Notes: a model not told the origin generated them from the sequence alone. A DNA stretch of 64,000 nt from Schizochytrium sp. TIO01 (GCA_004764695.1 SMSO01000037.1:3014747-3078746); one strand, 5' to 3'. Counted from the stretch's first letter, positions 1-53,303 are shown. Made by a program: numbers and translations.

Positions 1-2454
1 GCGACCTCACGCAGAGCACGGCGAAGTGAAGCAGAGAGAAGGAAAGATAAGGTGTCTCGTCGTGGTCAGCACTGCAGCGAAGGAATCACAGCCCGCCAAG
101 ATTTGCCGCCTTCGCTGGAATGCTGACCTTCTCGCGCGAAAGTGCACTTTGCATATTGGGTGGTCACCTTTGAATAGCACTTGCACGCGTGCATTATTTC
201 CTGGTTTGCGGGTTGCGGCCAATAAATGAATGAATAAAGGAATAAATGAATCAACGATTGACACAGAGGTTTGAAATACGATGTGAAGTCCTGTATATGA
301 TCTACGACGCAGGTAAAGTTTGCAAGCCCGCTTGACTATGCAGGCAGCAAATGGCGGAGTGCTTGCAGAGTTCTCAGGACTCACGCTGACAAAGGGCAGA
401 AAGCACCTCCCTAGGTGGGCACTTGCCTCGAGCGCTACTACGCAGGAAAACATTGGCTGCCAACAAAAGACTTGTCTGAAAGAGAACTGCAAACCGTGTG
501 CGCTGTATTCTCTGGAGCCTGAAGGCCTTGAAGCCTGAGGTTATGACTGATTTACTCAACGGTGTTCGTCCCTCCCAGGAGCCGCGATTCTCGGGTGGCC
601 AGAGCACAAGTACGTACGCACGTCAGCGCAACGGCACAATGCCCTCGCAGGCCAGTAGCACTCGTACGAAGGAGTCAGAGGCCACTATGAAGAAACCAAG
701 AATCCCCGTCAGCCAATCTTTCAGAGCAGTTGAGATCACCCGAACTTTTGTGGTGGCGAACACACCATGCTCGTGGGAAGAAATGGTGACGAGAATCCTC
801 ACCTCCTTGGATTTTGTTCGTTTTGCGCGGCTTTTGGTGTATAAGTTTTTATATCAATGTGTTTTCGGAGGCTGGACAAGAGGAATCTCCCAGCAGTGGT
901 ATTTTATTTACTCTTTTCCGGCCTTTCAGGCCCACCTCATGAAACAGAGGTCGGGGGCTGGAGACTGTAGAGAGGCGAGCTCAGTGGCAAGTGATCTTCT
1001 TCGCTCGCTTGCTCAATGTTTGACGCAGGCAAGTGCAATGATATTCTTTTTAGAAGAAAACTAAACAGGAAAAACTCGCACTTCCGCACGTGCTTTTCTC
1101 GGTTAGTAGGTAAGCAGAAGAAGAAATGTTCGAAAAAGATGAGTTCCCACAGAACATTTCTTCTGTTTAAATCACAGGACTAAACATCTGAACACAAATT
1201 CAACTACTTTATTTAAAATTGCCATCCTTCAAGTTTCTATGTAATATGTTGCGACACCGTCTCATTGAATTGCAAAATCGACTGTATAGAATTAACCGGC
1301 CACTTTACAGAACCAGCAAGTCAGTGTGATAATTTTCATGTCTAAAAAAGCTTCACTCGTACCTCTTTTAGTTTAAGAGGGAGCTGTTTCTAAAATATCA
1401 GCCTAAATGGCTGCTGCGAGTGAGGCAGTTTAGATGAAACTCAATTAAATGAAAAACAAAAAAAAACAGAACCAGCGAGAGATAAAAGAAATATGCGCTT
1501 TTCTCATTGATAAGGGATACACAGTTCAAAATAGTATGGTGCATTTTGAGAACTTCTCGTAAGCTCTAACTGGTTTTATTATTTCCTACTCTCATCATTC
1601 CTCTCGTATAAAATCTTGTGTAGACATGAAATGTTACATATTAAATCTGGCAAAAGCAAAAGCTTCGCCAAGATCAAACTAGATAAGCAAGCAGTCATAG
1701 CATTCTGCCAGATCAATGAAGTCTTGGTAAAGTCGTAAGCATGTAGCGACATCGTGTCATGCTTCCACTGCATTTAAGGCAATGAGTTCGCTTGTTCATT
1801 GATCAATTGATGTAGAATAAGCAACAAAATGTGTTGTTTCTGTCATCCAAGGTTGCGAGAAGTTAGATATTCCAGAGGCAAGAGACAATTCCCTTCCTCA
1901 AGAAATGCATGCCATGCGAGGAGGATACAGGGCAATATCAAGCAACAGATCAAATGACTACTACGAACAAAGCGAACGAAGAAAGAAAATATAAAGAGTG
2001 GTTTTTGAAGTAAAGCCAACACAGGACGTAATCAATGCAGAGCAAAGAGCACACGAAGAGAATCTCCCAGGTCTATAGATATTTGATATGGTAGGAAAGC
2101 AGATCACCAAGAGAGCATAACACTGCCTCGAGGGAGGAATATGAAGAGGATCGATGAATCCTCCATCATGATGGCAGGTGGCAGGTGAACAGCAAGGCCA
2201 TAGACGCGGGTGGACGACTACGTGCACAATTGAAAAGATCAAGTGCTAGACGTTTAGGTGGTTTGGGGTATATATGGGGGGGACTCGGAAAAAGGAGGGC
2301 GGGGATGTTGTCTGTCATAGCAAGCGTCATAACCCACAAAGACTGGGCATTAGTTGATGCATGCGTAAAGTGCTTACAAATTTGTGTGTGTGAAGTAAGC
2401 AAAAGTCTATCTAGCGTGTGTGTGTGTGTTTTTGTTGTTGTTGCGAAGTTAGAC

Positions 2455-12554: not shown

Positions 12555-13946
12555 CTTTGTCCATGCATCGACCAATCTTCGGCCTTCCTTTCAATTAATG
12601 GAAAGAAAGTGGTAGGAACTGCTAGGGCCTAGCTAGGTACATCGATGTAATTTGAATTTTTATTTATTTGTTTTCAATTAAAGTAATGGTATTGTATAGC
12701 ATTGTGGATAGCGTGATAGGTAGCAATCGGTTTGAAAAGTTTTTAATGACTGAAGAAGAAGATGTCATTCATTCATTCATTCCTTCATTCAAAATTGGTC
12801 GTCGCTCTGTCTTCTCTTTTCCGTAGCGAGGAATAGGGAACTGCTAGCACCAGCAGTTCGAAAGAGTACAACCGCCGTGTTGATAGCAGGATATATGAAG
12901 CAAAGAACGAAACAGGAACGCTGCAAGAACGTTTGAACTGAGGATGGATGAGAGGGCGCCACAGGCGTCTCAACAACCTTTGCGCTTGGGTGGAGGATAC
13001 ATTGTTGTACTACACTGCCACTACCACAGTTAGACCCCTTCTCTCTAAAAAGAAATCACTTGTTGCGTTTATCGATTATTTATGCGGCGCTATGCGTTCC
13101 GTTCTGAAATGGATAAGAACTTAAATATGGGAGGTTTTCCGCAGACTATCACACTGACGCTAGTTTGGTGGCAGTGGTAGGAAGAGGGGTTTCAATGGCC
13201 TGAAGCTTTTGGGATTAACTTCACGATACAAGCTGTGGGGAAGGAAATGTAAACGCTGCTGTGAGGATGATTTCCCAGTGGAAATGAGAGGCAAATGTTC
13301 GAAAGTTAATGGAGTTTAAATTCGTCCAAGGTGACAGTGTATTTGTGAGGGAGAGTGCGCCAGTGGAGGGCTTTAAACAATTTGAAAGAAAGAAAGAAAG
13401 AACATGAAAAGAAAGAGAGAAAGAGAAAGAGAAAGAGAGGAAGACAGACAGACAGACTGACAGACAGACAGTCAAACAGCAAACCGCCGTCGCTCCCGAC
13501 TTCGCTCCGAGGCCGCTGCTCTTGTGTGTGGCGCGGTCAACCTAGCTCTCTCGGTACCTTCGGTGATTCCCTCGGGCCTCCCCATATACCCTTTCTCCTT
13601 GCCCTGCTCCGTTGACGCTCAGAGGTTGCATCAGGGATCCGGTCGGATCTCGATCAGCGCTCTCTCTCTCGTTATCCACTTCTTTCTCCGCTCCAGTCAG
13701 GTTTCGACCTGCTATCGCCGGACGTGCGAGGCCTCCTGACTGGACGTCTCTCCGTGCCGGTAACCTACAAGCAAACAAACCCTCTGGGTGCGTGGCTTTG
13801 CCCTGCTCTGGCGGTTTTTCAGTCGAGAAAAGAGGTGTCTCTTTCTCGTTACTCTTGTTGTTCTTTGCTCCCCGCATATCATCAACAAGTAGCCAAGTAA
13901 TCCCATAGGTGGTTGAACCCAAAGAAGCAAACCAAGAGCAAGAACC

Positions 13947-16688
13947 ATGGACAACCTCACGGAGATTCTGCTTGCGACGCAGAACAACGATGCCAACGCA
14001 CGTGTGCCGGCCGAAAAGGCCCTCGCGGAGTTTGAGCAGAACAGCTTCCCGCAATATCTCGTGGCATTGGCCCGTGAGATGGGCGATGAAAACAAGCCAG
14101 AGAACGCCCGTACTCTCGCTGCTCTCCAGGCCAAGCGTATCCTCACAGGTAACGATGACTTCAGCATTCGCAGGAAGCACGACCAATGGGCTGAGACTGT
14201 CCAGCCCGAGGCCAAGAACATGATCAAGCAGACCATCCTCCAAGTCCTCGCATCCCAAAACCAGAATGTTGCCCGCCAGGCCGCACAGGTCATGGAGGCT
14301 ATTGCCAAGTTTGACCTCTCTAACGATGAGTGGAACGAGCTCCCCTCTCAGCTTGTTCAGGTATTTGACCAGGTCCACAGCCGTAACGCAGACCACATCA
14401 TTGGACCTCTTCTTGGTTTGGGATACTTTGCCTCCACCGCTGTGGAAACTGGATATGGTCTTGACGAGAACGCCATTAACCAACTTCTTAGCAAGATCTC
14501 CGTTGGTATGAGTGCTGACCGCCCCCGCGATGTTCAGGTCGCTGCCACTGATGCTCTTGCAGACACTCTCGACTTTGCTCGTCACAACATGGAGAACCAG
14601 CAGGAGCGCAACGTTATTATGGAGATGATCTTGCGTATGACGCAGTCTCCCCACGCCGAGGTCCGCGAACACGCCTTTCAGTGCCTCACCACCGCTCTTG
14701 AGCTCTATTACCACCTTCTCAAGGACTACATGCAAGCCATTTATGACATTACCACTAAGGCCATCCAGAATGTTGATGAGGAGCGTGTTGCTATGCAGGC
14801 ATTGAACTTTTGGTCCGAAATGGCCTTTGAGGAGGCCGAGCGCCGTCTCGGAGACCAGAACAGCGAGGACCCATCTAGCGTTTACCTTGGCTTTGTCGAT
14901 ACTGTTAAGGAACCTCTTTGCAAGCTCGTCTTGGAGTTCGCCTTGCTGCAGCAAGATGAGGAGCCCGATGAAGATGAGTCCTCAGACAACACCCTCTATG
15001 GTGCTGCCGAGCACTGCTTTGTCAACTTGAGCTCTTGCTTAGGCCAGGCTATTATCCCCTACACCATTAACTTCACTTCTCAAAATGTCGTGTCCCCGGA
15101 CTGGCGCCGCCGTCAGGCTGCCATCTTTGCCTTTGGTGCCATCCTTCGCGATGCCTCTAGCCATGAGATGAGCTCTCCCATCAACGAGATTATGCCTGTT
15201 CTTGTGCAGCGCATGCTCGTTAATACCCCTCAGGAGCTCCAGGGCTCCAACGCCCAGCCTGAGCCAGTCGCCACTGTTCGTGAGACCGCAGCCTGGGCCA
15301 TCTCTGTTATCTGCTCTGCGCACATCGCCTGCGTCAACAACAGCAACATCAAGTTGATGCTTTCCAGTACCTACGAGGCACTTCGCGATCGCCCTCGTGT
15401 GGCTCACATGGCCGCCGCCGCTATTTATGCCTTTGCTAATGCTTTTGCCGGCCAGGCCGACCAGCAGACCAACCAGCTCAGTGGTGAACTCATGCAGACC
15501 TTTGGAAGTGCCCTCTGGGACGCCGCTCGCCGTGAGGATAGCGACCAGTGGCAACTCATGGAGGATGCCTATGAGGCTCTCATTCGCCTCATTGAGGTAA
15601 GTGCTGTTGACATGCGCCAGTACGTGGGCTCGGTTCTTCTTCACACCAGTCTTGTCCGCCTCAGCGAGATCCGCTCTGGAGAGGTCCAAGACCAAACTGG
15701 TTTTCAGGAAGTTGAGCTCTGTGGTGTCGTCAGCGTGTGCATTATCAAGCTTGAGGAGTACCTCCTACAGATCCCGGTTAACAATGGCGCCCCATCTGAC
15801 AACCCTCAGATGGCTGTACCTGATCAGATCATGCAAACCATGATTGAGATTCTTAACCGCCCCAACTCCAACGCTCATCCCGATGCTCTTCATGCGATTG
15901 GTGAAGTGACCCGCGTTGTCGGATCCAACTTTAGGCGCTACATGCAGAGCGTTGTTCCCCTGGTGTTGCGAGGACTCAACGCCCGCGAGAACTCTCAAGT
16001 TTGTATCGCTGCTGTCCGTCTCTGTGCAGATGTCTGCAATGCGCTGAAGGAACAGCCTGAGTTGGTCCAGCTCACTCCGGAGCTCATGAAGCTCATCTAC
16101 GCCAACCTTGGATCTGATGACCTCCAGTCTGAAGTGAAGCCCCCGCATTTGACAATTCTTGGAGATATTGCCGATGCGATTGGTGCTGATAACTTTAAGC
16201 CATACTTCAGCCAGGCTATGCAAACTGCTCTATCCGCTGCTAATGTCGGTCTTGAAATTACCGAAGCTGAGTATGCCGATGACCTCAACAGCCTTCGTGA
16301 GGCTGCCCTCGAGGCCATGGAGCTTATGCTCCTCGACGTTGATAACATGTCCATCCAACCGTTCCTTGAGCAGATCTTCTTCCTTGCTCGCTCTATCTCT
16401 CAGGAGATCGTGGATCCTCGCAACTATTACGAGAACAAGGACCCGTCCATCATCCCCCCCGATCTTGGAAGTCTCACTAACCTGCCCTACAAGGTGGCTG
16501 ATGCTGTTGTGAAGAGTATCCTCAACATTCTTGGTGATGTGACTAAGCAGGTTGGCGATCCCTTCCGCAAGCCTCTGCGCGAGAGTATGCAGCAACTTAC
16601 ACCCCTCGTTCAGTATGCTAAGCAGTCCTCGAACAGTGATTTAGTTGATGCTGCGGATTACGCTCTCAGCCAGATTGGCAGCAACTAA
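13947..16688 (+). CDS. KPNB1: Importin subunit beta-1 (karyopherin beta 1)
   Basis: 913 aa. IBN_N-like start (MDNLTEILLATQ...AEKALAEFEQ...R.LAAL..K..L), WNELP, AMQALNFWS, acidic loop QQDEEPDEDE, DWRRRQAAIFAFGAIL, VRETAAWAI and VKP..L..LGDIA.AIG. HEAT-like helices throughout. Confidence 0.95.
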   Translation: MDNLTEILLATQNNDANARVPAEKALAEFEQNSFPQYLVALAREMGDENKPENARTLAALQAKRILTGNDDFSIRRKHDQWAETVQPEAKNMIKQTILQVLASQNQNVARQAAQVMEAIAKFDLSNDEWNELPSQLVQVFDQVHSRNADHIIGPLLGLGYFASTAVETGYGLDENAINQLLSKISVGMSADRPRDVQVAATDALADTLDFARHNMENQQERNVIMEMILRMTQSPHAEVREHAFQCLTTALELYYHLLKDYMQAIYDITTKAIQNVDEERVAMQALNFWSEMAFEEAERRLGDQNSEDPSSVYLGFVDTVKEPLCKLVLEFALLQQDEEPDEDESSDNTLYGAAEHCFVNLSSCLGQAIIPYTINFTSQNVVSPDWRRRQAAIFAFGAILRDASSHEMSSPINEIMPVLVQRMLVNTPQELQGSNAQPEPVATVRETAAWAISVICSAHIACVNNSNIKLMLSSTYEALRDRPRVAHMAAAAIYAFANAFAGQADQQTNQLSGELMQTFGSALWDAARREDSDQWQLMEDAYEALIRLIEVSAVDMRQYVGSVLLHTSLVRLSEIRSGEVQDQTGFQEVELCGVVSVCIIKLEEYLLQIPVNNGAPSDNPQMAVPDQIMQTMIEILNRPNSNAHPDALHAIGEVTRVVGSNFRRYMQSVVPLVLRGLNARENSQVCIAAVRLCADVCNALKEQPELVQLTPELMKLIYANLGSDDLQSEVKPPHLTILGDIADAIGADNFKPYFSQAMQTALSAANVGLEITEAEYADDLNSLREAALEAMELMLLDVDNMSIQPFLEQIFFLARSISQEIVDPRNYYENKDPSIIPPDLGSLTNLPYKVADAVVKSILNILGDVTKQVGDPFRKPLRESMQQLTPLVQYAKQSSNSDLVDAADYALSQIGSN

Positions 16689-18080
16689 ATGCCCCTAATT
16701 TGATCTACACCGCTTTTACAACACACACACAAAAACTGTTCACAAGCAACCTACGTGTTTGCTGACAGAATTATTTGCGAAGGTATAGCAAAAGAAAGGC
16801 TGCGTAGATCAAATGCAGGGTATTTGGTCGCTAAGGAATATACAATTTATGGCACTACAGTGTTTTTCTTCTGTTCTGCGATTTGCAAACAGCCAGTGGA
16901 ACACCCCATACTACAATCTACCCTCAATCAAATACAACACACAACACACACTTTCTGTAGCTTTTAGTTTATTAGCTATTCAGCGAGCAGATCGTACATA
17001 ACACATCACACACACAAACACACACCCACGAGTCAGATGGCTGTTGCTAAATTGATTCCATTTAAAATGTTTTTTTGTAAAAAGAAAAAACATGGAACCT
17101 TTTCACATGCCAATAGTCTTGCTCGTACGCTTGGTGCCCATTTGGTTGCCCTGGCCATTGTGCAAGGAGAAAGTAACAAATGACAACCAAGATTTTTTCA
17201 TCACACACAACACACAATACTATTGAAACCTGCAAACTCATTTAAGTTTCTTGTTTACCTTACGCTTTGAATAGCAAGGGAGCCAGACATTTCTATATTT
17301 TCGTCCAATGGCGCTTGTTGTCCCTTCATATCTTCTTTCTCTACCTACCCTGAAGCTGTTGCTGGTCAATATATGATTCAGAATTCATCTCCTTCATCAA
17401 TATTTTAATTGACCAACTTTTTCGTCGGCAAAGGTAGTAATCGAGATTTATCAGATAAAGATGATGAAGTGAGGTATGTTACCTTTTCGGACAGTGCTGT
17501 TAGTGATCTCTGACTCCCTTTCTATCTCATTTTTAATTACCCCTCGGTAAACAATGAAGCTTGGACGAGAATGCTGGAGATCTTGGAAATACGTAATCTC
17601 GGATACTAACCCCACATCTTTTCTCATGGTTTCTAGTTGAAGGTCACGACTGTGCTCTAGTATGTAAAATTACTGGAACATTGTTAATAGCACTTGAACT
17701 AGCGAGCTATGGTTTGGTTAGTCTCGCACCGTAGATTTTCGTAGATCCCGTCGTTCAATACAACAACATCCACAACACACACACAACACACAATTTTAAT
17801 TTTTTACAACACCAACAACACACATCACATTATTTAGCATCGCACCACCTTGGCGTGTCTCTGAACCCTAATATCCACCTCCCCCTCGTCCCCTCACCTC
17901 ACCGCATTTGAATGAACTTCTTTTTGCACATTCCTGGAAGCTCTAAGCACGATAGCAAGAGGTCATCGATGAAAACTTGTCATGCCATCATGCGCACACA
18001 GATTGATTGAGTATTTTACTCATATCACAAGATACTTATGGAAAATGGTTGAATTCTTGACTATTCAAATGTCTAGCTAA

Positions 18081-21000
18081 TTAGCCTATCCTTTCTATCA
18101 CAAAGGAGCCAAAGGCACGCAGCATCATCTTCGGGAAAGAGTCTGGAATGACACTATCTAACCTGGCCCATGCTTGCTCTACCTCATTCTCAGCCTGCTG
18201 CACGCATTCATCAATTGCACCGAGCTCCTCCAGCTGCTGAATGATTGCATCCACCACAGCTTGGTCTTGTGGCTTCGAACGGATTGTATCCCAAAGACTG
18301 CGACGATCCTCTTGGCTTGATAGCCGAGCCATGGCTTTGGCTACTGGAAATGTTACCTTGCCATCCACAATATCTTCCCCTAGTCTCTTTAGAGAAGTAC
18401 CGAGCTTGAGCTTGTCGGTTTCCTTGGCGAAGAGTCCTCGTAAGTTGAGCACATCATCCATAATTTGAAACGCGATTCCAATACTTTCAAAGTAACGGCC
18501 CATCGCTTCAATCTGTTCCTCGCTACCTTTGCCCACAAGAGCCCCCATACGAGCTAATGTACCTGCGGGGACTGCTGTTTTCAGCATGTGAATACCAAGG
18601 ATGCGTTCTTGAAGCAAGCTTGCATCACCTGACTCAACAACCTCATCCATCATGTAATCCAGACCGTTAATGTCCAGCGCTTGGCCGGCATGTCCTCCGC
18701 GCAGAGCAGCAAAATACAAAGCATAGCATCTGTTCAACTCTTCAGGAGTAAGCCCCGGAGCACGAATCATTTGCTCACATTGGAAGTACGCTGCAGTACC
18801 TGCGTTGATACACAATGCATCACCATATACGCGGTGAGCAGCAGGCCCGCCACGTCGAGTTTCTGAGTGATCTTGTATATCATCCACAATAAGCGATCCG
18901 ACGTGCAAAAACTCAGGCATAGCGACCCAGTCAACAAAATCACGCGAGTCGCCACCTACACAGTCCACGCAAGCCAGAGCACCATAGGAGCGCCATGATT
19001 TGCCACCCCTGTCTGCAATAAGACGAACAGGGGCAATTAACGTCTGGCCAAGCACGTCCAAGGGAACTCCAGACATGTAATGTGGTGTGTCTTTGGTTGC
19101 AATTAGTTCAAGTGCCTCTTCATATGTTGGGTGCAAAGGGTACATGCTCTGCACACTTGCTCGAACTTTCTTGCCCACATTCTTGAAGAATGTCTTGATG
19201 TTTTGATCTTCTCCAAATCCATTTCTTTCTACATAGGCGAGACCCTTCACAGGTGTCCCATACTTTGTGCCATAAACCTTGCAACGACCTTCCCAAAATG
19301 CAGGCTTTGCAATCAATGTCATCAATTCTTGATCTGGAAAGCTAGCTTCCACGCATAGGTCCAAACCTACCCCTGGAACCTGCAAATGATATTTAAGCGG
19401 GTAGGAGACAAATGTTCGTACGGAGGTCCACGTTGCCTCCCGAGATGAGTCTGCTGTGAAGGAAACTCCGTGAGAGCCGTCAAACTGTGTTCGATTTCCC
19501 TCAGCATCAATCACAATAGCTTTGACCTCCATTATCTCATTCTTGAGCGGGTTGACTAAAAGTGCAGCAGAGATCTCCGTGTTATCGTCTAGTTGTGCTG
19601 CAACCCAGTTCCATGCATATCTTCCTGTATGGTGTTCACCTAGACGATCCGCGTGACCTTTACCCTCTACTTCAGGTTCTGAAGAGGTATCCGACCTCGC
19701 GGTTTGTGCATCGTGATCGTGCTCGTCGTCATGACTGTTTGACTTGCTATTGATACGTTCCTCCTCTGGGACGCCGCCGAATTCGTGGTCATACCATCCT
19801 GAGCCATGGACGACGGTGAGTTGCTCTGCTTCTGCCTTCTCCATTGCCGCACCACGTTTGACTGGGATTGGGACATGCATTGAGCCAGTGACCTTGCAAC
19901 GAGTGATACAGTAATAAAACATGTCATCTCCTTCACGGCCTTTCACTACGCCATGGTCGCCGTGTCGGATAGGTGCTTTTTGCGGCACAAATTTAAGGTC
20001 CAGGTTGCACGGGAGCTTGTAATGGGAAGCGCGAAGATGATAAAGTCCATCAGATGTTTTGTGAAGAGAGCCGCCTTCGTAGTCAAGGCGAAGCTCCTCT
20101 CCATCGGTTTTGACAACCGCATCACGAGAAAGGAGACGATCTGGTAAAGGAACATTGCCCTTTTCCAAGATCTCCCGAAAAGCTCGCTGGAGGATAAGGT
20201 CTTGCGTCCCATGCCCCTCGTCAAGAGCTTTGAGGATACTCCGAGGAGCGTCCTGTTCTAGGATAACATCTGCATAGTATTTATTCTTTTCCACATCACT
20301 TACTGCCCAGGTGAGCGCATGGCTAAAGTGCCTCTTTCCGGAATGTTTGTCGTAGTATTTAAAGAACCGAAAGAAACACACAAAGACACTCAGTTTGCGG
20401 TTTGCTCCTGTAGGGTCTGCTGCACAGTCAAGATGAGCATGATAATACCACCACTCTGTCTGACTGCGAGGGTGTGGAAGATCGTGAATAGCTAAGTCGA
20501 TCGGACCCATGCGCCCAGGCCAATCTACACGTAAAGGCGGCTCTAAGAGTGCCTCTATAGCTTCTTGCGTTTGAGGTCCCCGAAGGAGCAGAACGCGCTG
20601 CAGATAGGCCTCAACCCTGGCTACATCATTTGCACCCAAAGATGAACGAAATCCCCAGAGCAGTTTGGACAGTGCAATAATCGAAACCAGTTGCATCAGG
20701 GCAGCCAAAGCAGCAAATTCCACACGAAGTCCCATTTCTTCCAGCCCTGTTGCAGCAACCGCAACATCCACGGCAACACAAGCAACCACAAATGCTGTCA
20801 AAACAAAGTAGTTGAACGTGTACTCGCTGTCAGAGTAAATATTCGAACCTGAAGAGTCTCTGCGACCTGGAAATGCGAGCACCTGATCGAGATCCTGCGG
20901 ATTGCGCTTGGATTCTACACGTTGCAAACTATGCAGCTGTCGATGGAACGCGGTCAAATCCGCCTCGCTGCGCACAACCTTGACCGGATTTCCATCACGG

Positions 21001-21155
21001 TCACCTTCGATCAAAAACCCAAGGACTTTGGACCCATCGCGAGAGGTTACAGTTTCCGTGCCTTTAACGCGCACGAGATATTGCCCTCTGCCACGACTAC
21101 TTTTTTCGCAATGCTGGCCTGAATCTTTGTGTGGCGCTTTACCACGCGCCGCCAT
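18081..21155 (-). CDS. Multidomain protein: PX-like domain with a two-TM insertion, AttH/CrtC-like double beta-barrel (lipocalin-like) domain, and trans-isoprenyl diphosphate synthase (type III GGPPS-like)
   Basis: First ATG is at 21155 (the ORF track starts at a TTG, 21167). AttH/CrtC motifs: H..SQTEWWYY, GSGWYDHEFG, WNWVAAQLDD, YPLKYHL.VP, DQEL...PAFWEG, G.AYVE. Prenyltransferase motifs: GGKSWR, LHVGSLIVDDIQD..TRRG (FARM), HAGQALD, KT, FQIMDDVLN (SARM), GEDIVDGKVTFP. Confidence 0.9.
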   Translation of the reverse strand: MAARGKAPHKDSGQHCEKSSRGRGQYLVRVKGTETVTSRDGSKVLGFLIEGDRDGNPVKVVRSEADLTAFHRQLHSLQRVESKRNPQDLDQVLAFPGRRDSSGSNIYSDSEYTFNYFVLTAFVVACVAVDVAVAATGLEEMGLRVEFAALAALMQLVSIIALSKLLWGFRSSLGANDVARVEAYLQRVLLLRGPQTQEAIEALLEPPLRVDWPGRMGPIDLAIHDLPHPRSQTEWWYYHAHLDCAADPTGANRKLSVFVCFFRFFKYYDKHSGKRHFSHALTWAVSDVEKNKYYADVILEQDAPRSILKALDEGHGTQDLILQRAFREILEKGNVPLPDRLLSRDAVVKTDGEELRLDYEGGSLHKTSDGLYHLRASHYKLPCNLDLKFVPQKAPIRHGDHGVVKGREGDDMFYYCITRCKVTGSMHVPIPVKRGAAMEKAEAEQLTVVHGSGWYDHEFGGVPEEERINSKSNSHDDEHDHDAQTARSDTSSEPEVEGKGHADRLGEHHTGRYAWNWVAAQLDDNTEISAALLVNPLKNEIMEVKAIVIDAEGNRTQFDGSHGVSFTADSSREATWTSVRTFVSYPLKYHLQVPGVGLDLCVEASFPDQELMTLIAKPAFWEGRCKVYGTKYGTPVKGLAYVERNGFGEDQNIKTFFKNVGKKVRASVQSMYPLHPTYEEALELIATKDTPHYMSGVPLDVLGQTLIAPVRLIADRGGKSWRSYGALACVDCVGGDSRDFVDWVAMPEFLHVGSLIVDDIQDHSETRRGGPAAHRVYGDALCINAGTAAYFQCEQMIRAPGLTPEELNRCYALYFAALRGGHAGQALDINGLDYMMDEVVESGDASLLQERILGIHMLKTAVPAGTLARMGALVGKGSEEQIEAMGRYFESIGIAFQIMDDVLNLRGLFAKETDKLKLGTSLKRLGEDIVDGKVTFPVAKAMARLSSQEDRRSLWDTIRSKPQDQAVVDAIIQQLEELGAIDECVQQAENEVEQAWARLDSVIPDSFPKMMLRAFGSFVIERIG

Positions 21156-23229
21156 CGCCCTTGACAACCAGCTGGCGGGTGCTTGCTACTGCACCTCAGC
21201 CCTAGTTGGTTGAGTTCAAGCTTTGTGGTACACGTGAATCAAGATTATGCGACTTGACCGATCCTCGCCAGATCGATCGTTGATTCACGATATGATAATC
21301 CTGATAATCTTGAGTAGTTTTTAGTTACACTTATGATGATGTCTGTTTATGGAAATAACAGTTTTTAAAAGTCTGTTTGCTTTATTTTGTTTAGAGGCTT
21401 TCTCTTTCTCTTTTTCTATTTGGTTGACCGCAAATTCGAGTTCTTCTATTAATCTTTCAGTACGGTCTCTGCAGAAGGTACCCACTGCCGCTTGCTATGT
21501 TTGTTGCTGATACCCTTCTCAACTTGACTTTTATTCTACTATACCCCGAGGCATTCATAAGCTTGTTATTGTTCGTTCCCACTTGCCTGGTACTAACCAC
21601 TATTTTCTGAAAAAATAAAATAAAGAATTCTGTAAAAACAAGCCAAAAAAGGAAAAAATTCCGACAGTTGATTTGAGTCTAAAGCTGTTGAAGATGCGCT
21701 TTCGTATATTTATGACAAGTTGAAACCTGCGCGGCGTTCCAAAGGGTGCAGCACTTGAGTGACCAGGAATCATTCGTTTACGCGCATTTAATGTATAGCG
21801 ACTAGAAAGCTTGAAGATGCGATAACCGGTCCTATATCTTCCTTGTATCCTGTTAAACTCTGCTCTTATGAGATTTATTGGAATGTTATTTTATATGACG
21901 CAGGATTGCGACGGCGACGGCATCTGCGAAGGCGTGCAGAAGAGGCGGTATCTGCGAAAACATGCAGGAAAACGCACCATTGCATCCGAAGCACAGAACG
22001 CCAGCCTACCATGTTGATACATGCACATTTCTTGAAAATATATGCTGTAGGCCTCTTCGCGACGCCCCATCATCTTCTTTTATTTTTGATTGTCCTCTTT
22101 TAATGCTGATTTGTTTTGGTCTTTTTTGTCCTTTTTTGTCATTCGTACCCAAATCTGAAACGCGCTTGTCCGGACGAATTCACAATAGCGCAAGATCTAT
22201 GACTATCACAGTGAAGAACCCTTCGTACCTCAAAGTTCTCCAAAACATTCTCAGACTACTTGCTGGCTGAAAAGGCGATGCAGCCAAGAGACCACGTGAA
22301 GTTAAGCTGCGTCGAAAACCTGAGGGCGCTGTTCTGAAGATGGAGCTCGCTCGAATGATGATGGTGTTGGTTGATGATGCAGTAGGAATCGTGCCGAATT
22401 AGAGTTTGAGGCGGTACTGGCCGTGCTGCTGACGACGACGCTGATCAAGATGACGAGGATTAGGGTGATGATGATAGTTTTCATGGTACGAACGAACAAT
22501 CGTGCGCGTGCCTGCACGGGCTCAGGACCAAAACAATCTTCGAGGAGACAACTTAAGCAATAGAAGTCGGTTCTGCACAAGATTATTCTTCAGCTCAAGG
22601 AAATCTTCAACATGGGCCAAGTCCACTGGTTCTCTGACCAGGTTGTTGAAGGAGCTCTTGTTTGTTTGTTTATTTGTTTGTTTGTCCACCTTCAAGGCGT
22701 CTTTATTCCAGTGGTAGCTCTCATTCTTACCTAACAGCTCTAACTAAGCTGCACAATACCTGTAGGCATTATTGGTCGCAAGGTCTTGACTCCGTTCGCC
22801 AACTTTGGCATTGTCCTAAAATAGTCTCGCCATGCACCAAGGTTCAGTCATTCGCACAAGAAGAAATGTTGTTGAGGTCCGTTTATTGTATTATGCCACT
22901 TTCCAGGTCTCTGCAAAACCACAACTTCAGGCAACCGTGATATTCGTACAGTTGCACTAGCACGGCGCGAGTAGCCAGCGCTCGCTCGCATCATCAGCTA
23001 ACCTGCAGCAATGCAGTGCTAGTCATTCCGGTGCTTAGGAAAAGGTTGTACATTCTTCGAGGCGACAGAAAGGAGGGGACTCAGGAAACTAGGGGAAAAC
23101 ATGAAGTATCTATGTACCTATTAGATAGTACGTACCATACATAGATACATCAATGTGAAACAGCGAAGACTGTCGGACGCAGCTTCGCTGAGACTTGAAC
23201 TGGTGCAAATCCACATTAGGAAAGGAAAC

Positions 23230-50528: not shown

Positions 50529-53303
50529 TTATTGGCGGATGGCCTTGTCCAGAGAGCGCTGCATGGAGGCGTTAACATCGCCATCCTCGCGGGCAGGGAA
50601 CGGGAAGGACTCACCGGTGATCTTCTCGTAGAGCATGATGTAGCGGCGGGAGAGCTCAGCGACAAGGTCGGCAGGGGCCTCAGGAAGCACCTCGTCCTTG
50701 TACGGGTCGCAACGCTCCGCGTACCAGAGACGCACGAACTCCTTGTCAACGTGCTGAGGGCTGCGTCCAGCCTCAACGTTGGCGGCATGGGTTTTATCGT
50801 CACCCACCCAGTAGCGAGAGCAGTCGGGGGTGTGGATCTCGTCAATGAGAAGGATCTCGCCGGTCTCGAGGTCACGGCCGAACTCGTACTTGGTGTCCAC
50901 GAGGATCAGTCCGTGCTCAGCAGCGGTCTTCTGGCCAAACGCAAAGAGCTCCTGGGCCTTGGCGTGACAGAAATCCCAGTCCTCCTTGTTCATCCATCCA
51001 TCACGCACAATGGTCTCGGCATCGATGAGCTCATCGTGCTCGTCACTCTTGGTGGTTGGTGTACACAAGTTCTTCTCAAGCTTCTGGTTCTTCTTAAGTC
51101 CATCGGGGAGCTTGTAGCCACAGTACTCACGCACACCCTTGTTGTAGTGAGTCCACATGGAGGTGCCAGAGCTTCCGGCAATGTATCCACGCATGACGAA
51201 CTCAATCGGGAAGGTCTTGCAACGGCGAGCGAGAGTAAGGTTCGGGTGCACCGGATTGGCCTTGGAGTTGGACGGGTGAAGCTGGTTCTTGATGATGTGC
51301 TCAGTCTTGCTGAACCACCAGAGGGAGACAAGGTTGAGCACAGCTCCCTTGAAAGGAATCTTGGCAAGCGGCCTGTCGAAGGCAGTCAAGCGGTCCGTAG
51401 TCACGAGCACCACGTTGCTTCCATCGTCGTAGCGGTCGCGAACCTTACCAACGTACTTGGCAACCTCAGTCTGACCATTCTTAGGGGTAAGGTGGAGGTC
51501 AGTGGCGTCAACAGTGTGTCCAATTGAGGCATAGATTCTGGGAAGGTATGCGTAAGTCTTGTCCTTGTTGGTGTACTCCTTCAGGTACTGCTCGTACTTG
51601 ACGTTCTCAAGGTGAGCCGCCTTCTCATAGACAGCATCGCGCTGGTCCGCGTGGTACGCATCGAGCTGCACACGGAGTCGAGCTGCAAGGCTTCCTTGAG
51701 CTGCTGCGAGCATTCTGATGGCCAAGAGTCCGGCGTTCATCGAGTTTCCAATAGCGACTGTCGCCACTGGCACACCCCTCGGCATCTGCACAATGGAAAG
51801 AAGGGAGTCGTTTCCACTCAAAGTTGAGGTTTTCACAGGCACTCCAATCACAGGGAGCGGTGTGAGCGCGGCAACCATACCCGGAAGGTGGGCGGCTCCA
51901 CCTGCTCCAGCAATGATGGTCTTGATGCCACGAGCCTGAGCCGCCTTGGCGTACTCGTACATGCGGTCTGGGGTGCGGTGAGCAGAGACAACGGACAGCT
52001 CGAAGGGAACTCCGAACTCGGTGAGCACGTCGGCGGCAGCGCGCATCGTCGGCAGATCCGAGTCACTGCCCATGATAATGCCCACGACGGGGGCCTCAGA
52101 GCTCGAGGACTTGGAGGGGCCAAAGTTGATGACATCAGAGGGGTCAAGCGGCTCGTTGAGGAGCACAAGGCGACGGCGGAGCTCGGGCATGTCGGGGGCG
52201 GTGACAGTAATGTGACCGAGCTTACGGCCGGGCCTAGAGTCCTTACCGTACCAGTGGATCTTGGCGCCAGGCACAGAAAGCGCAGGCTTGAAGGAAGCAA
52301 TGGTCTCCTCTTCAGTGGCAGCACCAAGAATGTTGATCATGGCGGCAGCACCGACGCGGAGGCTAGTGTCACCAAGCGGGAGGCCAGAGACAGCGCGAAG
52401 GTGCTGCTCAAACTGAGAGGTCACACATGCCTCAATGGTGAGGTGGCCCGAGTTGTGCGGGCGTGGGGCGATCTCGTTGTAGACGACGCGGTCGCCACCC
52501 ATCCAGAACATCTCCACAGCAAAGACGCCAGCACCCTGAATAGCGCTCACGGCAAGCTCTGCTACACGCTGGGCCTCGACGCGAGCAGCCTCCGGCAGGT
52601 TGATGGAAGGCGGCACCACAACCACGCGGCAAATGTTGTCGGCCTGACGGGTCTCCACAACATCGTAGCAGACAGTGTTTCCCTCGCGATCGCGAGCCAC
52701 GATGCAAGCAAGCTCAGCCTCAAAGGGAGCCCACTTCTCGAGGTACACGCCGCCAACTTCCACAGCCTTGCCGAGGCTGCGCAAGGCCTCCTCGATACCT
52801 TCAGCGTTCTTGACCACAGCATTTCCGCGGCCGTCATATGCCATGCATCGGCTCTTGAGCATCACAGGGTATCCGCCGAGTCTGTTCTCAGCTGCGTCAC
52901 GCACAGCGTCAACAGTGGCGTCCACCTTCTCGTAGTCGATGATGGGGACACCAGAGGCGCCCATGACGTCCTTTTGAACTGCCTTGTCAGCAATAATGCG
53001 CAGAGCAGACGGCGACGGGTGCACGGGGCGTCCCTGACGCTCGAGCTCCTCGAGAGCGTCAACGTTCACGTGCTCAATCTCGACGGTGAGGACATCTCCA
53101 GAAAGGGCGACCACGGCGTCGCGGTCCATAAAGCTACCCTTCACCACGCGGCAAACCGGGGCAGCAGAGGCCTCAGCGCCAGAGGGGTCCAGGCACACGA
53201 GGTCCAAACCAAGGCGTGCACCATCAAGGGCCATCATGCGTCCAAGCTGGCCGCCGCCCAGCACGCCTACGGTGCGAGCCACGCCGTCGATGCGGTTGGC
53301 CAT
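50529..53303 (-). CDS. purK-purE-purC: Trifunctional purine enzyme: PurK (N5-CAIR synthetase) + class I PurE (N5-CAIR mutase) + PurC (SAICAR synthetase)
   Basis: [26 protein letters not shown] and [12 protein letters not shown] (PurK); [14 protein letters not shown] and [10 protein letters not shown] (PurE); [34 protein letters not shown] and DKEFVR (PurC). All lie in one 924-aa ORF. Confidence 0.97.

Follow-up and report, generated by a model that had tools for sequence, protein, structure and literature searches.

Within the AttH/CrtC superfamily of double beta-barrel proteins, the hydratases characterised to date are stand-alone proteins of ~320-400 aa that all turn an isoprene C=C into a tertiary alcohol, and one of them, CrtC, accepts C20 geranylgeraniol. 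The protein NE1406, a solved AttH structure (2ICH), has no known activity. In myxoxanthophyll biosynthesis, an isoprenoid end group is hydrated to a tertiary hydroxyl by CruF/CrtC and is then glycosylated by the glycosyltransferase CruG, separate enzymes acting on C40 carotenoids. The role of CruF in the first step of this pathway has been described (PMC6013536).

A second group of relevant systems comprises the fungal bifunctional terpene synthases (fusicoccadiene synthase type; PvCPS, 8V0F/6V0K), in which a tailoring domain is followed by a GGPPS-like prenyltransferase on one polypeptide, the prenyl diphosphate being made and transformed on the same protein. In PvCPS, the prenyltransferase occupies residues 669-906 of 959. 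To our knowledge, the characterised bifunctional prenyltransferase chimeras all use alpha-helical cyclase domains.

The gene described here lies in a 64,000-nucleotide stretch of DNA from Schizochytrium sp. TIO01, hereafter the window, and encodes a protein in which an AttH/CrtC double barrel is covalently joined to a prenyl diphosphate synthase domain. The tailoring domain precedes the prenyltransferase, which is C-terminal, an order also found in PvCPS, and the two prenyltransferases match in Foldseek with an E value of ~1e-9. However, in place of the cyclase folds of the fungal chimeras, class I (alpha) or class II (beta-gamma), the window protein has an unrelated all-beta AttH barrel as its tailoring domain, and no terpene-cyclase domain was found in this protein either with Pfam or with Foldseek of the AlphaFold2 (AF2) model. 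The initial annotation had likewise proposed an analogy with fungal chimeras but with an unrelated tailoring fold. The taxonomic distribution differs as well, the window family being mainly bacterial and stramenopile. As developed below, the window protein could be a bifunctional isoprenoid enzyme in which a diphosphate of roughly C20 is made by the prenyltransferase and its chain is hydrated by a barrel acting as general acid, a reading that we judge to have an even chance of being right.

A single gene with a wide family of homologues

The reading frame is open over 18081..21167 on the minus strand, with a first ATG at 21155 and a stop codon at 18081-18083, and it encodes 1024 uninterrupted amino acids (Table 1). 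Contigs from four independent runs, each from a different study, span the whole ORF with identical and continuous sequence, at a depth of 85-320 across the gene that falls to ~0-8 past 21650. These runs were taken as RNA by guess only, and their contigs also take in the convergent neighbouring gene. On that presumption, the gene is real, single and expressed, in agreement with the initial reading of one uninterrupted ORF. With 8 synonymous and 7 non-synonymous strain variants, the ORF offers too small a sample for a judgement on selection.

Table 1. Features of the window protein and their positions in the window
Feature	Residues	Position	Strand	Evidence
Whole ORF, 1024 aa + stop, single unspliced gene	1-1024	18081..21155	-	Translation; contigs of 4 runs end to end without joints
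N-terminal region, PX-like	1-232	20460..21155	-	AF2 pLDDT 79.8; weak Foldseek PX matches
Hydrophobic helix pair, probable membrane hairpin within PX-like domain	113-169	20649..20819	-	Hydropathy and AF2
First barrel, Pfam CrtC N-terminal lipocalin domain, TEWWY to GWYDHEFG	233-460	19776..20459	-	Pfam; Foldseek 2ICH, 7A0T
GWYDHEFG motif with family aspartate D456	453-460	19776..19799	-	Alignment with AttH and kievitone hydratase
Acidic low-confidence inter-barrel insert, lineage-specific	461-511	19623..19775	-	AF2 confidence; alignment
Second barrel, Pfam Lipocalin_9; holds WNW, DQE, FWEGR, ERNG	512-646	19218..19622	-	Pfam; Foldseek
Helical connector, FFK.VG..VR.SV..YP...LIA	647-705	19041..19217	-	AF2 helices pLDDT >87; kept in A1 and A2
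Trans-isoprenyl diphosphate synthase domain	706-1024	18084..19040	-	Pfam, NCBIfam, PDB profile, Foldseek, motifs
FARM DDIQD	758-762	18870-18884	-	Motif
SARM DDVLN	900-904	18444-18458	-	Motif

That the ORF might be a gene-model artefact, arising from two adjacent genes or from an assembly chimera, is scarcely credible: evidence in its favour was looked for and none was found, while no stop codon interrupts the frame and the four runs yield one continuous sequence. In the same line, the fusion is found in one MMETSP and one TSA transcript from relatives and is common to hundreds of homologues from bacterial and protist genomes, and the AF2 model made for residues 200-1024 (pLDDT 91.2, pTM 0.90) packs barrel and synthase together. 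An artefactual fusion was rejected on these grounds. The pTM of this two-domain model is in addition consistent with a fixed, rigid arrangement of the barrel relative to the synthase.

More than 300 homologues with the same three Pfam domains were collected from stramenopile protists and, patchily, from Myxococcota, Bacteroidota and Cyanobacteria, the barrel-synthase core being 45-50% identical between bacteria and protists. Trees built separately for the barrel and for the synthase agree: the N-terminally extended group found in one is recovered in the other, and the window protein keeps its nearest relatives; the two parts are inherited as a unit. The initial annotation had anticipated that uncharacterised homologues may exist while knowing of no characterised enzyme of this architecture. 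The first expectation is fulfilled by hundreds of proteins, and, in the literature searched, which leaves most subscription journals outside, neither a paper on the architecture nor a characterised member was found. The architecture is therefore uncharacterised rather than unseen, and its members bear automatic database names such as 'GGPPS/predicted secreted hydrolase', 'Geranylgeranyl pyrophosphate synthase' or 'Octaprenyl diphosphate synthase family'.

The prenyl diphosphate synthase domain

The Pfam family polyprenyl_synt (PF00348) matches residues 706-974 with an E value of 4.7e-43 (147.7 bits, cut-off 27), and the coordinates of the intact DDIQD and DDVLN motifs, on which a trans-prenyltransferase had initially been recognised, were verified. 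The other synthase motifs were located as GGKSWRS (717-723), RRG (767-769), HAGQ (822-825), KT (859-860) and GEDIVDGKVT (926-935). In the alignment of 89 homologues, GGKSWRS, HVGSLIVDDIQD, RRG, KT, FQIMDDVLN and GEDIVDGKVT are invariant or nearly so, and the residues of chain elongation, for both IPP and the allylic substrate, are still kept at 29% identity. The modelled fold is all-alpha, with helices at pLDDT >87, the first of them supplied by the connector that follows the second barrel, and Foldseek aligns it with 1WY0, 3QQV, 5JFQ and others at TMt 0.74-0.88. All catalytic motifs are shared with short-chain trans-isoprenyl diphosphate synthases and GGPPSs (1WY0, 5E8H, 2DH4/2Q80), and the domain is predicted to be a catalytically competent trans-prenyl chain elongator. 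From this motif set, it would condense IPP onto an allylic diphosphate and stop at a short or medium chain length, with GGPP (C20) as the most likely product.

As to the class of the synthase, the resemblance to type III GGPPS pointed out in the initial annotation holds for the motifs and not for overall similarity. On the one hand, the marks of the yeast and human enzymes (2DH4/2Q80) are mirrored: GKxxR[ST], the small residues G753 and S754 at positions -5 and -4 before the FARM, HxGQ and DDxxN, with H822-A-G-Q aligning with the HRGQ of the canonical GGPPS encoded in the same genome. On the other hand, the domain is only 25% identical to that canonical type III enzyme, and PDB profiles score archaeal and plant GGPPSs at 88-83 bits (best 1WY0) against 61 for yeast and 53 for human. 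Besides, all NCBIfam equivalog cut-offs are missed by far (GGPP_syn, 93.7 bits against 500; best, 137 against 468), and the domain forms a clade of its own in which the barrel is always attached.

Given the intact synthase domain and the automatic annotations, the protein could be a plain GGPP or other polyprenyl diphosphate synthase whose barrel is an evolutionary passenger or a domain for localisation or oligomerisation. This is, however, very unlikely, since barrel and synthase co-evolve and are equally strictly conserved in bacteria and eukaryotes alike, whereas a passenger would decay. Furthermore, the genome has separate genes for a canonical type III GGPPS, an FPPS and a COQ1-type synthase, and the canonical GGPPS of A. 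limacinum, a protein of 417 aa, is a functional enzyme. A housekeeping GGPPS role was rejected because of these separate synthases, and the window protein is an extra, specialised enzyme. Its neighbours in the window, coding for an importin-beta, an alpha/beta hydrolase and a kinesin, give no pathway clue, and a pathway gene cluster in the window was rejected.

The AttH/CrtC double barrel and its candidate reaction

Both halves of the barrel are recognised above the curated Pfam cut-offs and in the expected order, CrtC at residues 233-460 (5.9e-14, 53.5 bits, cut-off 22.5) preceding Lipocalin_9 at residues 512-646 (3e-17, 63.4 bits, cut-off 26.2). The motifs TEWWYY (233-238), GWYDHEFG (453-460), WNW..QLDD (515-524) and FWEGR (620-624) fall within them, in support of the complete AttH/CrtC double barrel seen at the outset. 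The middle region was also modelled as an AttH barrel, Foldseek of the AF2 model retrieving AttH NE1406 (2ICH; E 5e-17, TMt 0.84) and kievitone hydratase (7A0T; E 2.5e-14, TMt 0.77), while profiles against the PDB match 2ICH at 9e-25 and 7A0Q at 8e-10. The double beta-barrel fold and the Pfam domains are accordingly shared with CrtC, kievitone hydratase (7A0Q/7A0T), Hgs and NE1406, the closest solved relative, although identity to solved structures is only 15-18%. A further difference from these proteins is a family-specific N-terminal DWP..HDLPH segment. The insert between the two barrels contains 14 D+E in 51 residues, falls below pLDDT 50 in its core (residues 479-508) and is missing in most relatives.

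The GWYDHEFG segment lines up with 'AWLDREWS' of AttH and 'TWYDRQWG' of kievitone hydratase, and the motif W-x-D-[HR]-x-[FW]-G, with its proposed catalytic Asp, is common to the window family and the AttH/CrtC superfamily. Among 89 sequences, no variation occurs at W454, D456, E458 and G460 and next to none at G453, Y455, H457 and F459. Together with the chain-elongation motifs, the aspartate of this motif is invariant down to 29% identity, the level at which relative L019 keeps it as WFDHQFGG. In CrtC, an Asp (Asp268 of RgCrtC) has been proposed as the proton donor (PMC4717167), to which D456 would be equivalent from the motif context described in that study rather than from a direct alignment. 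Of the CrtC residues His239, Trp241 and Tyr266, the His239/Trp241 pair is not evidently conserved, as far as the published description of CrtC and the alignment with AttH and kievitone hydratase show: no clear identical counterparts are seen in the window protein, and the segment ~30 residues upstream, MFYY, is aromatic with no His-x-Trp. Further polar residues are nonetheless invariant in the barrel, the full set being H228, E234, R397, H398, D456, E458, Q609, E610, E622 and E643; judged from the alignment, so many are unusual for a mere lipid pocket.

We infer the hydration chemistry and the order of the steps as follows. The double barrel, packed rigidly on the synthase, would work as a cofactor-free general-acid catalyst in which Asp456 donates a proton to a trisubstituted C=C along the isoprenoid chain. 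Water would then capture the carbocation and leave a tertiary alcohol, the outcome also known from CrtC, kievitone hydratase and the archaeal hydroxy-GDGT synthase (Hgs). Neither the window nor the bacterial loci examined show any carotenoid genes nearby.

Ligand binding is the classical role of the calycin/AttH fold, and NE1406 has been read as a lipid-binding protein with internalised ligands. The barrel might then be non-catalytic, a lipocalin-like module that binds the hydrophobic product or primer of the synthase, passes it to the membrane or to the next enzyme and may regulate the synthase. The lack of a cofactor site and the predicted membrane targeting of the eukaryotic forms would suit such a module, and the glycosyltransferase fused in some relatives (see below) would still be sensible if the barrel presented the lipid to it. 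This alternative is nevertheless unlikely in view of the many invariant charged and polar residues, among them the family Asp in a motif common to two proven hydratase lineages, and of the fact that the characterised CrtC/Lipocalin_9 members in the literature read (CrtC, KHS, Hgs, PenF/AsqC) are all enzymes.

Rather than a simple hydratase, a catalytic barrel could also be a terpene cyclase of class-II-like type, with protonation as the initiating step, or an enzyme of cationic rearrangement. The synthase product would then become a terpenoid diphosphate or alcohol that is cyclic and possibly hydroxylated. For CrtC itself, the proposed mechanism was modelled on squalene-hopene cyclase and involves an acidic Asp and aromatic residues, two members of the superfamily, PenF and AsqC, carry out cationic rearrangements of epoxides, and the domain order is that of fungal cyclase-prenyltransferase chimeras. 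However, no AttH/CrtC family member is known to cyclise a polyene and the sequence holds nothing that separates cyclisation from hydration. This possibility is quite unlikely in our view. In broader terms, the initial proposal of an enzyme that makes a polyprenyl diphosphate and then hydrates, cyclises or binds it is compatible with the sequence findings.

Accessory domains, proposed membrane targeting and meaning for the family

Relatives of the window protein offer a new observation, namely the presence of additional enzymes fused to, or located beside, the same core. Three colinear proteins of ~1500 aa, with a mutual identity of 28-35%, combine Sulfotransfer_3, GT1, CrtC, Lipocalin_9 and polyprenyl_synt. 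Three shorter ones consist of GT1 and the core, one of which was verified as a continuous ORF on the DNA, and GT1 genes adjoin the core gene in one cyanobacterial and one deltaproteobacterial MAG. These associations are limited to a minority of relatives, some of the prokaryotic ones. An all-against-all comparison of the neighbours in 15 bacterial loci yielded no neighbour family common to the lineages, with only scattered glycosyltransferase and methyltransferase neighbours, and a conserved operon context was rejected.

Since GT1, with or without the sulfotransferase, is fused N-terminally to the core, or GT1 adjoins it, in some prokaryotic relatives, these sequences suggest that the core product bears a hydroxyl group that gets glycosylated. 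They thereby bring indirect support to the make-then-modify reading, even though the glycosyltransferase might instead act on a primary alcohol left by loss of the diphosphate, and not on a tertiary one. In the hydratase reading, the GT1 of these relatives would probably glycosylate the hydroxyl of the product and the sulfotransferase of the five-domain forms would probably add sulfate, the family thus yielding amphipathic hydroxylated terpenoid lipids. The suggested order, hydration then glycosylation, is the one of CruF/CrtC and CruG. The difference is that the partner of the barrel is here a chain-elongating synthase and that some members of the family put all steps, plus the sulfotransferase, on one polypeptide.

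At the other end of the window protein, the N-terminal region is modelled as three strands and helices broken by a hydrophobic helical hairpin, and it ends in the family-specific segment DWP..GPIDL..HDLPH. The modelled topology fits a PX fold, and nearly all the top Foldseek matches of the region are PX domains, but they are weak (E 0.03-0.3) and align only 55-70 columns. The Pfam PX domain PF00787, which many relatives do have, gave no match in the window protein, at E<=0.01 for residues 1-232 and at E<=0.1 for the whole protein. The hydrophobic helix pair (AF2 helices 107-135 and 143-168; Kyte-Doolittle 19-mer maximum of 2.5) is a probable membrane hairpin. In alignment A1 it is seen only in the window protein and in the relatives closest to it (P0002-P0004, P0007, P0009 and P0012), which form one 10-row subclade in the tree. 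The PX-like head and the hairpin would anchor the enzyme to an endomembrane, which would give the window protein a membrane location.

A wider proposal, which we put forward tentatively, is that the AttH-prenyltransferase core is the engine of an unrecognised lipid pathway of marine and soil bacteria and stramenopile protists, building a polyprenyl diphosphate and subjecting it, still on that protein, to protonation-driven hydration or a new, beta-barrel type of terpene cyclisation. The five-domain forms would lead to an undescribed class of sulfated terpenoid glycolipids, and the eukaryotic copies would share their origin with the bacterial ones, the PX head retargeting them to PI3P-bearing endomembranes.

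A protein in which a chain-elongating synthase is rigidly fused to an AttH/CrtC barrel serving as cofactor-free acid catalyst would represent a departure from the alpha-helical-cyclase chimeras and, with the glycosyltransferase and, in some cases, the sulfotransferase added in certain lineages, points to an uncharacterised family of hydroxylated, possibly glycosylated, isoprenoid lipids. If this is true, the large and mostly function-less AttH family would gain a defined substrate source, and a possible selective biocatalyst for hydrating isolated double bonds would become available. Finally, the database names of plain GGPP or octaprenyl synthase would be corrected, which is of relevance to the metabolic models of industrial thraustochytrids.

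A single gene joining a barrel and a prenyl synthase

The open frame encodes 1024 aa from its first ATG, at 21155; a public gene call differs from it only in starting further in, at a GTG (V28). Every motif that the initial annotation had listed for this ORF was found at its given position, and the three Pfam domains assigned to it lie well over the curated cut-offs (see table). ORFs of at least 200 aa are sparse here (20 in the 64-kb window), a 924-aa one lying elsewhere in the window.

Continuity was checked with Logan contigs from four runs of four studies, guessed to be RNA, which were placed on 16800-22400. In each run, one contig of 7.8-8.1 kb spans the fusion gene without joints, starting at ~13480-13495, as calculated from the record offsets, and ending at 21268-21614, that is 113-460 nt upstream of the fusion ATG. 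Small indels in two of the runs (X7 and X13, from a source called organism E) all lie outside the ORF. The depth of 85-320 across the gene, against ~0-8 past 21650, is as expected of RNA, the run type being guessed. Since the contigs also take in a convergent importin-beta-like gene, they do not on their own prove a single mRNA; all four bridge the 1.4-kb gap between the two genes, suggesting that the 3' UTRs abut or overlap. The same architecture is found in a Mucochytrium MMETSP transcript and in one TSA transcript. Taken together, the jointless contigs, the relatives' transcripts and hundreds of genomic homologues with the same fusion make the reading as two separate genes untenable and point to one gene, and it is hardly conceivable that the ORF is an artefact.

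The core of barrel and synthase (residues 200-1024) was modelled with AF2 from an 89-sequence alignment, with a pLDDT of 91.2 and a pTM of 0.90; confidence is low only in an acidic insert, specific to the lineage, the core of which (~479-508) has a pLDDT <50. The AttH fold proposed for the middle region holds in this prediction, as Foldseek retrieves AttH itself and kievitone hydratase from the PDB. Both folds are confidently assigned, and their arrangement, itself confidently predicted, seems to be fixed, with which the high pTM and the conservation of a helical connector (residues 647-705) agree.

Residues 1-232 have no match in Pfam; a PX domain (PF00787) occupies the aligned position in many relatives. 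The AF2 model of this head (pLDDT 79.8) has three strands together with helices and a hairpin of two long, hydrophobic ones, with a hydropathy maximum of 2.5, and nearly all its top Foldseek matches are PX domains, at weak E values (0.03-0.3). In the alignment of the fusion protein with its relatives, the hairpin occurs in the window protein and in its nearest relatives, a group that the tree joins in a single subclade; bacterial fusion proteins are devoid of the entire head.

Features of the fusion gene, its protein and related loci
Feature	Position	Strand	Basis or remark
Fusion open frame	18081..21167	-	stop 18081-18083
CrtC	residues 233-460	-	Pfam
Lipocalin_9	residues 512-646	-	Pfam
polyprenyl_synt	residues 706-974	-	Pfam
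Hydrophobic helices of head	residues 107-135, 143-168		AF2
AttH NE1406 (2ICH)			Foldseek vs PDB, E 5e-17, TMt 0.84
Kievitone hydratase (7A0T/7A0Q)			Foldseek vs PDB, E ~1e-14, TMt ~0.77
GGPP and other polyprenyl synthases (1WY0, 3QQV, 5JFQ, PvCPS PT domain)			Foldseek vs PDB, top matches
Importin-beta-like gene	13947-16688	+	convergent
Gap between the two genes	16689-18080		bridged in 4/4 runs
924-aa ORF	50529-53303
Canonical GGPPS (L082)	G000:C31:1129450-1133172		574-aa frame
COQ1-like (L083)	G000:C10:118933-122694		435-aa frame
COQ1-like (L084)	G000:C24:5736687-5740448		435-aa frame
Fifth synthase (L086/L087)	G000:C4:138865-142717		two frames
GT1-barrel-synthase ORF	L089:28-3417		metagenome contig
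CAAX endopeptidase gene	L016:6459-7313		LWZ2-11
Fusion gene in two pieces	L013:8001-10224 (G004:C1:522960-525198)		deltaproteobacterial MAG
Stand-alone AttH-like (example)	G150:C1:1193772-1194389		Myxococcota

Distribution and evolution of the fusion

The uncharacterised homologues that the initial annotation had thought possible do exist, the same three Pfam domains being present in >300 proteins of bacteria and protists. A barrel-only profile matched 461 cluster representatives at E<=1e-30 in 1.84 billion; the best 150 of these are mostly 720-1000 aa long, which is the fusion length, and every fusion-length protein among them that was scanned with Pfam is a fusion. The closest named homologue (71% identity) comes from the thraustochytrid Hondaea fermentalgiana, in keeping with a labyrinthulomycete-like protist as the source of the window, the other named eukaryotes being Mucochytrium and Cafeteria, and the named bacterial hosts are Myxococcales/Archangium/Kofleriaceae, Bacteroidota/Chitinophagaceae, one cyanobacterial MAG and some 'Proteobacteria' MAGs. 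Bacterial fusions share 39-49% identity with the window protein across residues 211-1022, and a relative at 29% identity (L019) still has all three domains. The distribution is patchy: of 151 genomes sampled in the Archangium phylum, only 3 carry the full fusion. In one deltaproteobacterial MAG (L013), the gene is matched as two pieces in different frames, with a junction near query residues 234-239 due to a frameshift or an assembly error. Besides, many fusion-less Myxococcota genomes encode stand-alone AttH-like proteins of ~350-400 aa, with 31-39% identity to residues 177-390 of a bacterial fusion protein; these are candidates for the closest unfused relatives of the barrel.

An unrooted tree of 95 members separates an N-terminally extended clade, with all named eukaryotes, from a short clade, with all named bacteria, the label 'eukaryote' deriving from the extension and only four named rows. 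Separate trees of the barrel and synthase columns both give this split (97* and 100*) and agree on the nearest neighbours; judged by their sequences, the two domains co-evolve. That the protein is just an ordinary synthase and the barrel a passenger, for which the preserved elongation motifs could speak, is regarded as improbable.

The architecture is already in public databases, under automatic names ('Geranylgeranyl pyrophosphate synthase', 'AttH domain-containing protein', 'GGPPS/predicted secreted hydrolase', 'Octaprenyl diphosphate synthase family'). No study of it was found in the literature searched, and a characterisation in a subscription journal may exist.

The synthase domain among the prenyl synthases of the genome

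The motifs GGKSWRS, H..SLIVDDIQD, RRG, KT, FQIMDDVLN and GEDI..GK.T are complete in the fusion synthase and vary little or not at all in the homologue alignment. The type III GGPPS resemblance put forward earlier stands for individual residues: Gly753 and Ser754 occupy positions -5 and -4 before the FARM, whereas archaeal 1WY0 has Tyr at -5, and His822, two residues ahead of GQ, is aligned to the HRGQ His of the canonical GGPPS encoded in this genome. It does not extend to overall similarity, which places the fusion synthase in a separate clade; its identity to that GGPPS is 25%, and its best NCBIfam score is 137 bits for cut-offs of 450-500. Because of the small residues and the His, GGPP is a reasonable guess for the product.

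The genome searched (64 Mb, 37 contigs) holds an FPPS-like gene, a canonical type-III GGPPS, a COQ1-type synthase at two identical loci and a fifth, divergent synthase, the fusion gene being its only Lipocalin_9 locus. The 417-aa canonical GGPPS from Aurantiochytrium limacinum supports beta-carotene synthesis in E. coli (PMC10141969). Given these separate FPPS-like, GGPPS and COQ1-type synthases, the fusion enzyme is a specialised addition to the set. As for these other genes, the GGPPS forms the C-terminus of its open frame behind ~280 low-complexity, Ser/Gln-rich residues, and its true start may be internal, the published AlGGPPS having 417 aa. The COQ1-like loci lie on different contigs and encode identical proteins, owing to a recent duplication or to haplotypes left uncollapsed. 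The fifth gene (FARM-like FVHDDMMDKAMTRRG, SARM-like FQGLDDVMDL) is split across two reading frames; it could contain an intron or a frameshift, or else encode an unusual subunit.

Putative chemistry of the barrel and its accessory domains

In the barrel profile alignment, GWYDHEFG corresponds to AWLDREWS of AttH and to TWYDRQWG of kievitone hydratase. In CrtC, the fully conserved Asp268 of the central conserved block, as well as Tyr266, His239 and Trp241, are essential, Asp268 being the proposed proton donor to the double bond, a role assigned from the analogy to squalene-hopene cyclase (PMC4717167). Hydration of an isoprene C=C to a tertiary alcohol is the reaction shared by CrtC, kievitone hydratase and Hgs, the hydroxy-GDGT synthase of archaea (bioRxiv 10.1101/2025.10.20.683597), and CrtC converts C20 geranylgeraniol but not shorter substrates (PMC6013536). 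Since Asp456 and a set of other polar residues are invariant in the fusion family, down to 29% identity, the sequences favour a catalytic barrel over a merely binding one, and a non-catalytic lipid binder is considered unlikely. A cyclase or rearrangement activity, in line with the cationic epoxide rearrangements of PenF and AsqC (PMC6013536), appears somewhat less likely still.

Three barrel-profile matches of ~1500 aa (P0210, P0232 and P0302) combine, in this order, Sulfotransfer_3, GT1, CrtC, Lipocalin_9 and polyprenyl_synt; GT1 (Glyco_transf_28 / EryCIII-like_C / UDPGT) is detected by Pfam in P0302 only, the other two being colinear there. These divergent, prokaryote-like sequences are colinear end to end at a mutual identity of only 28-35%, one being strongly acidic (18% D+E) and one most similar to the cyanobacterial member, and they look like an uncharacterised terpenoid-glycoside megasynthase. 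GT1, barrel and synthase are also joined in two further proteins (P0226 and P0245) and on metagenome contig L089, where one uninterrupted ORF was confirmed on the DNA. Downstream of the fusion gene in the cyanobacterial MAG, genes for an FkbM methyltransferase, a UDPGT/EryCIII-type GT1 and a FAD-binding protein lie on the same strand, and a deltaproteobacterial MAG has an EryCIII-like GT 1.5 kb away. The association is not universal, no neighbour family being conserved across lineages among the bacterial loci compared, and no gene cluster surrounds the fusion gene within the window. Chitinophagaceae bacterium LWZ2-11 has a gene of the Rce1-like CAAX prenyl endopeptidase family (CPBP) ~600 bp upstream of the fusion, on the same strand. 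GT1 enzymes glycosylate hydroxyl groups on lipophilic aglycones, and their recurring association is the best available argument suggesting that the core product carries a hydroxyl group.

The fusion is of the same kind as the bifunctional prenyltransferase chimeras, but its tailoring fold is unrelated to known terpene cyclases. The synthase would make a ~C20 allylic diphosphate, of which the barrel would protonate a trisubstituted double bond, water quenching the cation; the simplest target would be the omega-terminal isopropylidene, chemically equivalent to the substrates of CrtC and kievitone hydratase. This make-then-hydrate reading is given an even chance overall. In the extended relatives, the alcohol would then be glycosylated and sulfated, and in the protist, the PX-like head and the hairpin would put the enzyme on an endomembrane.
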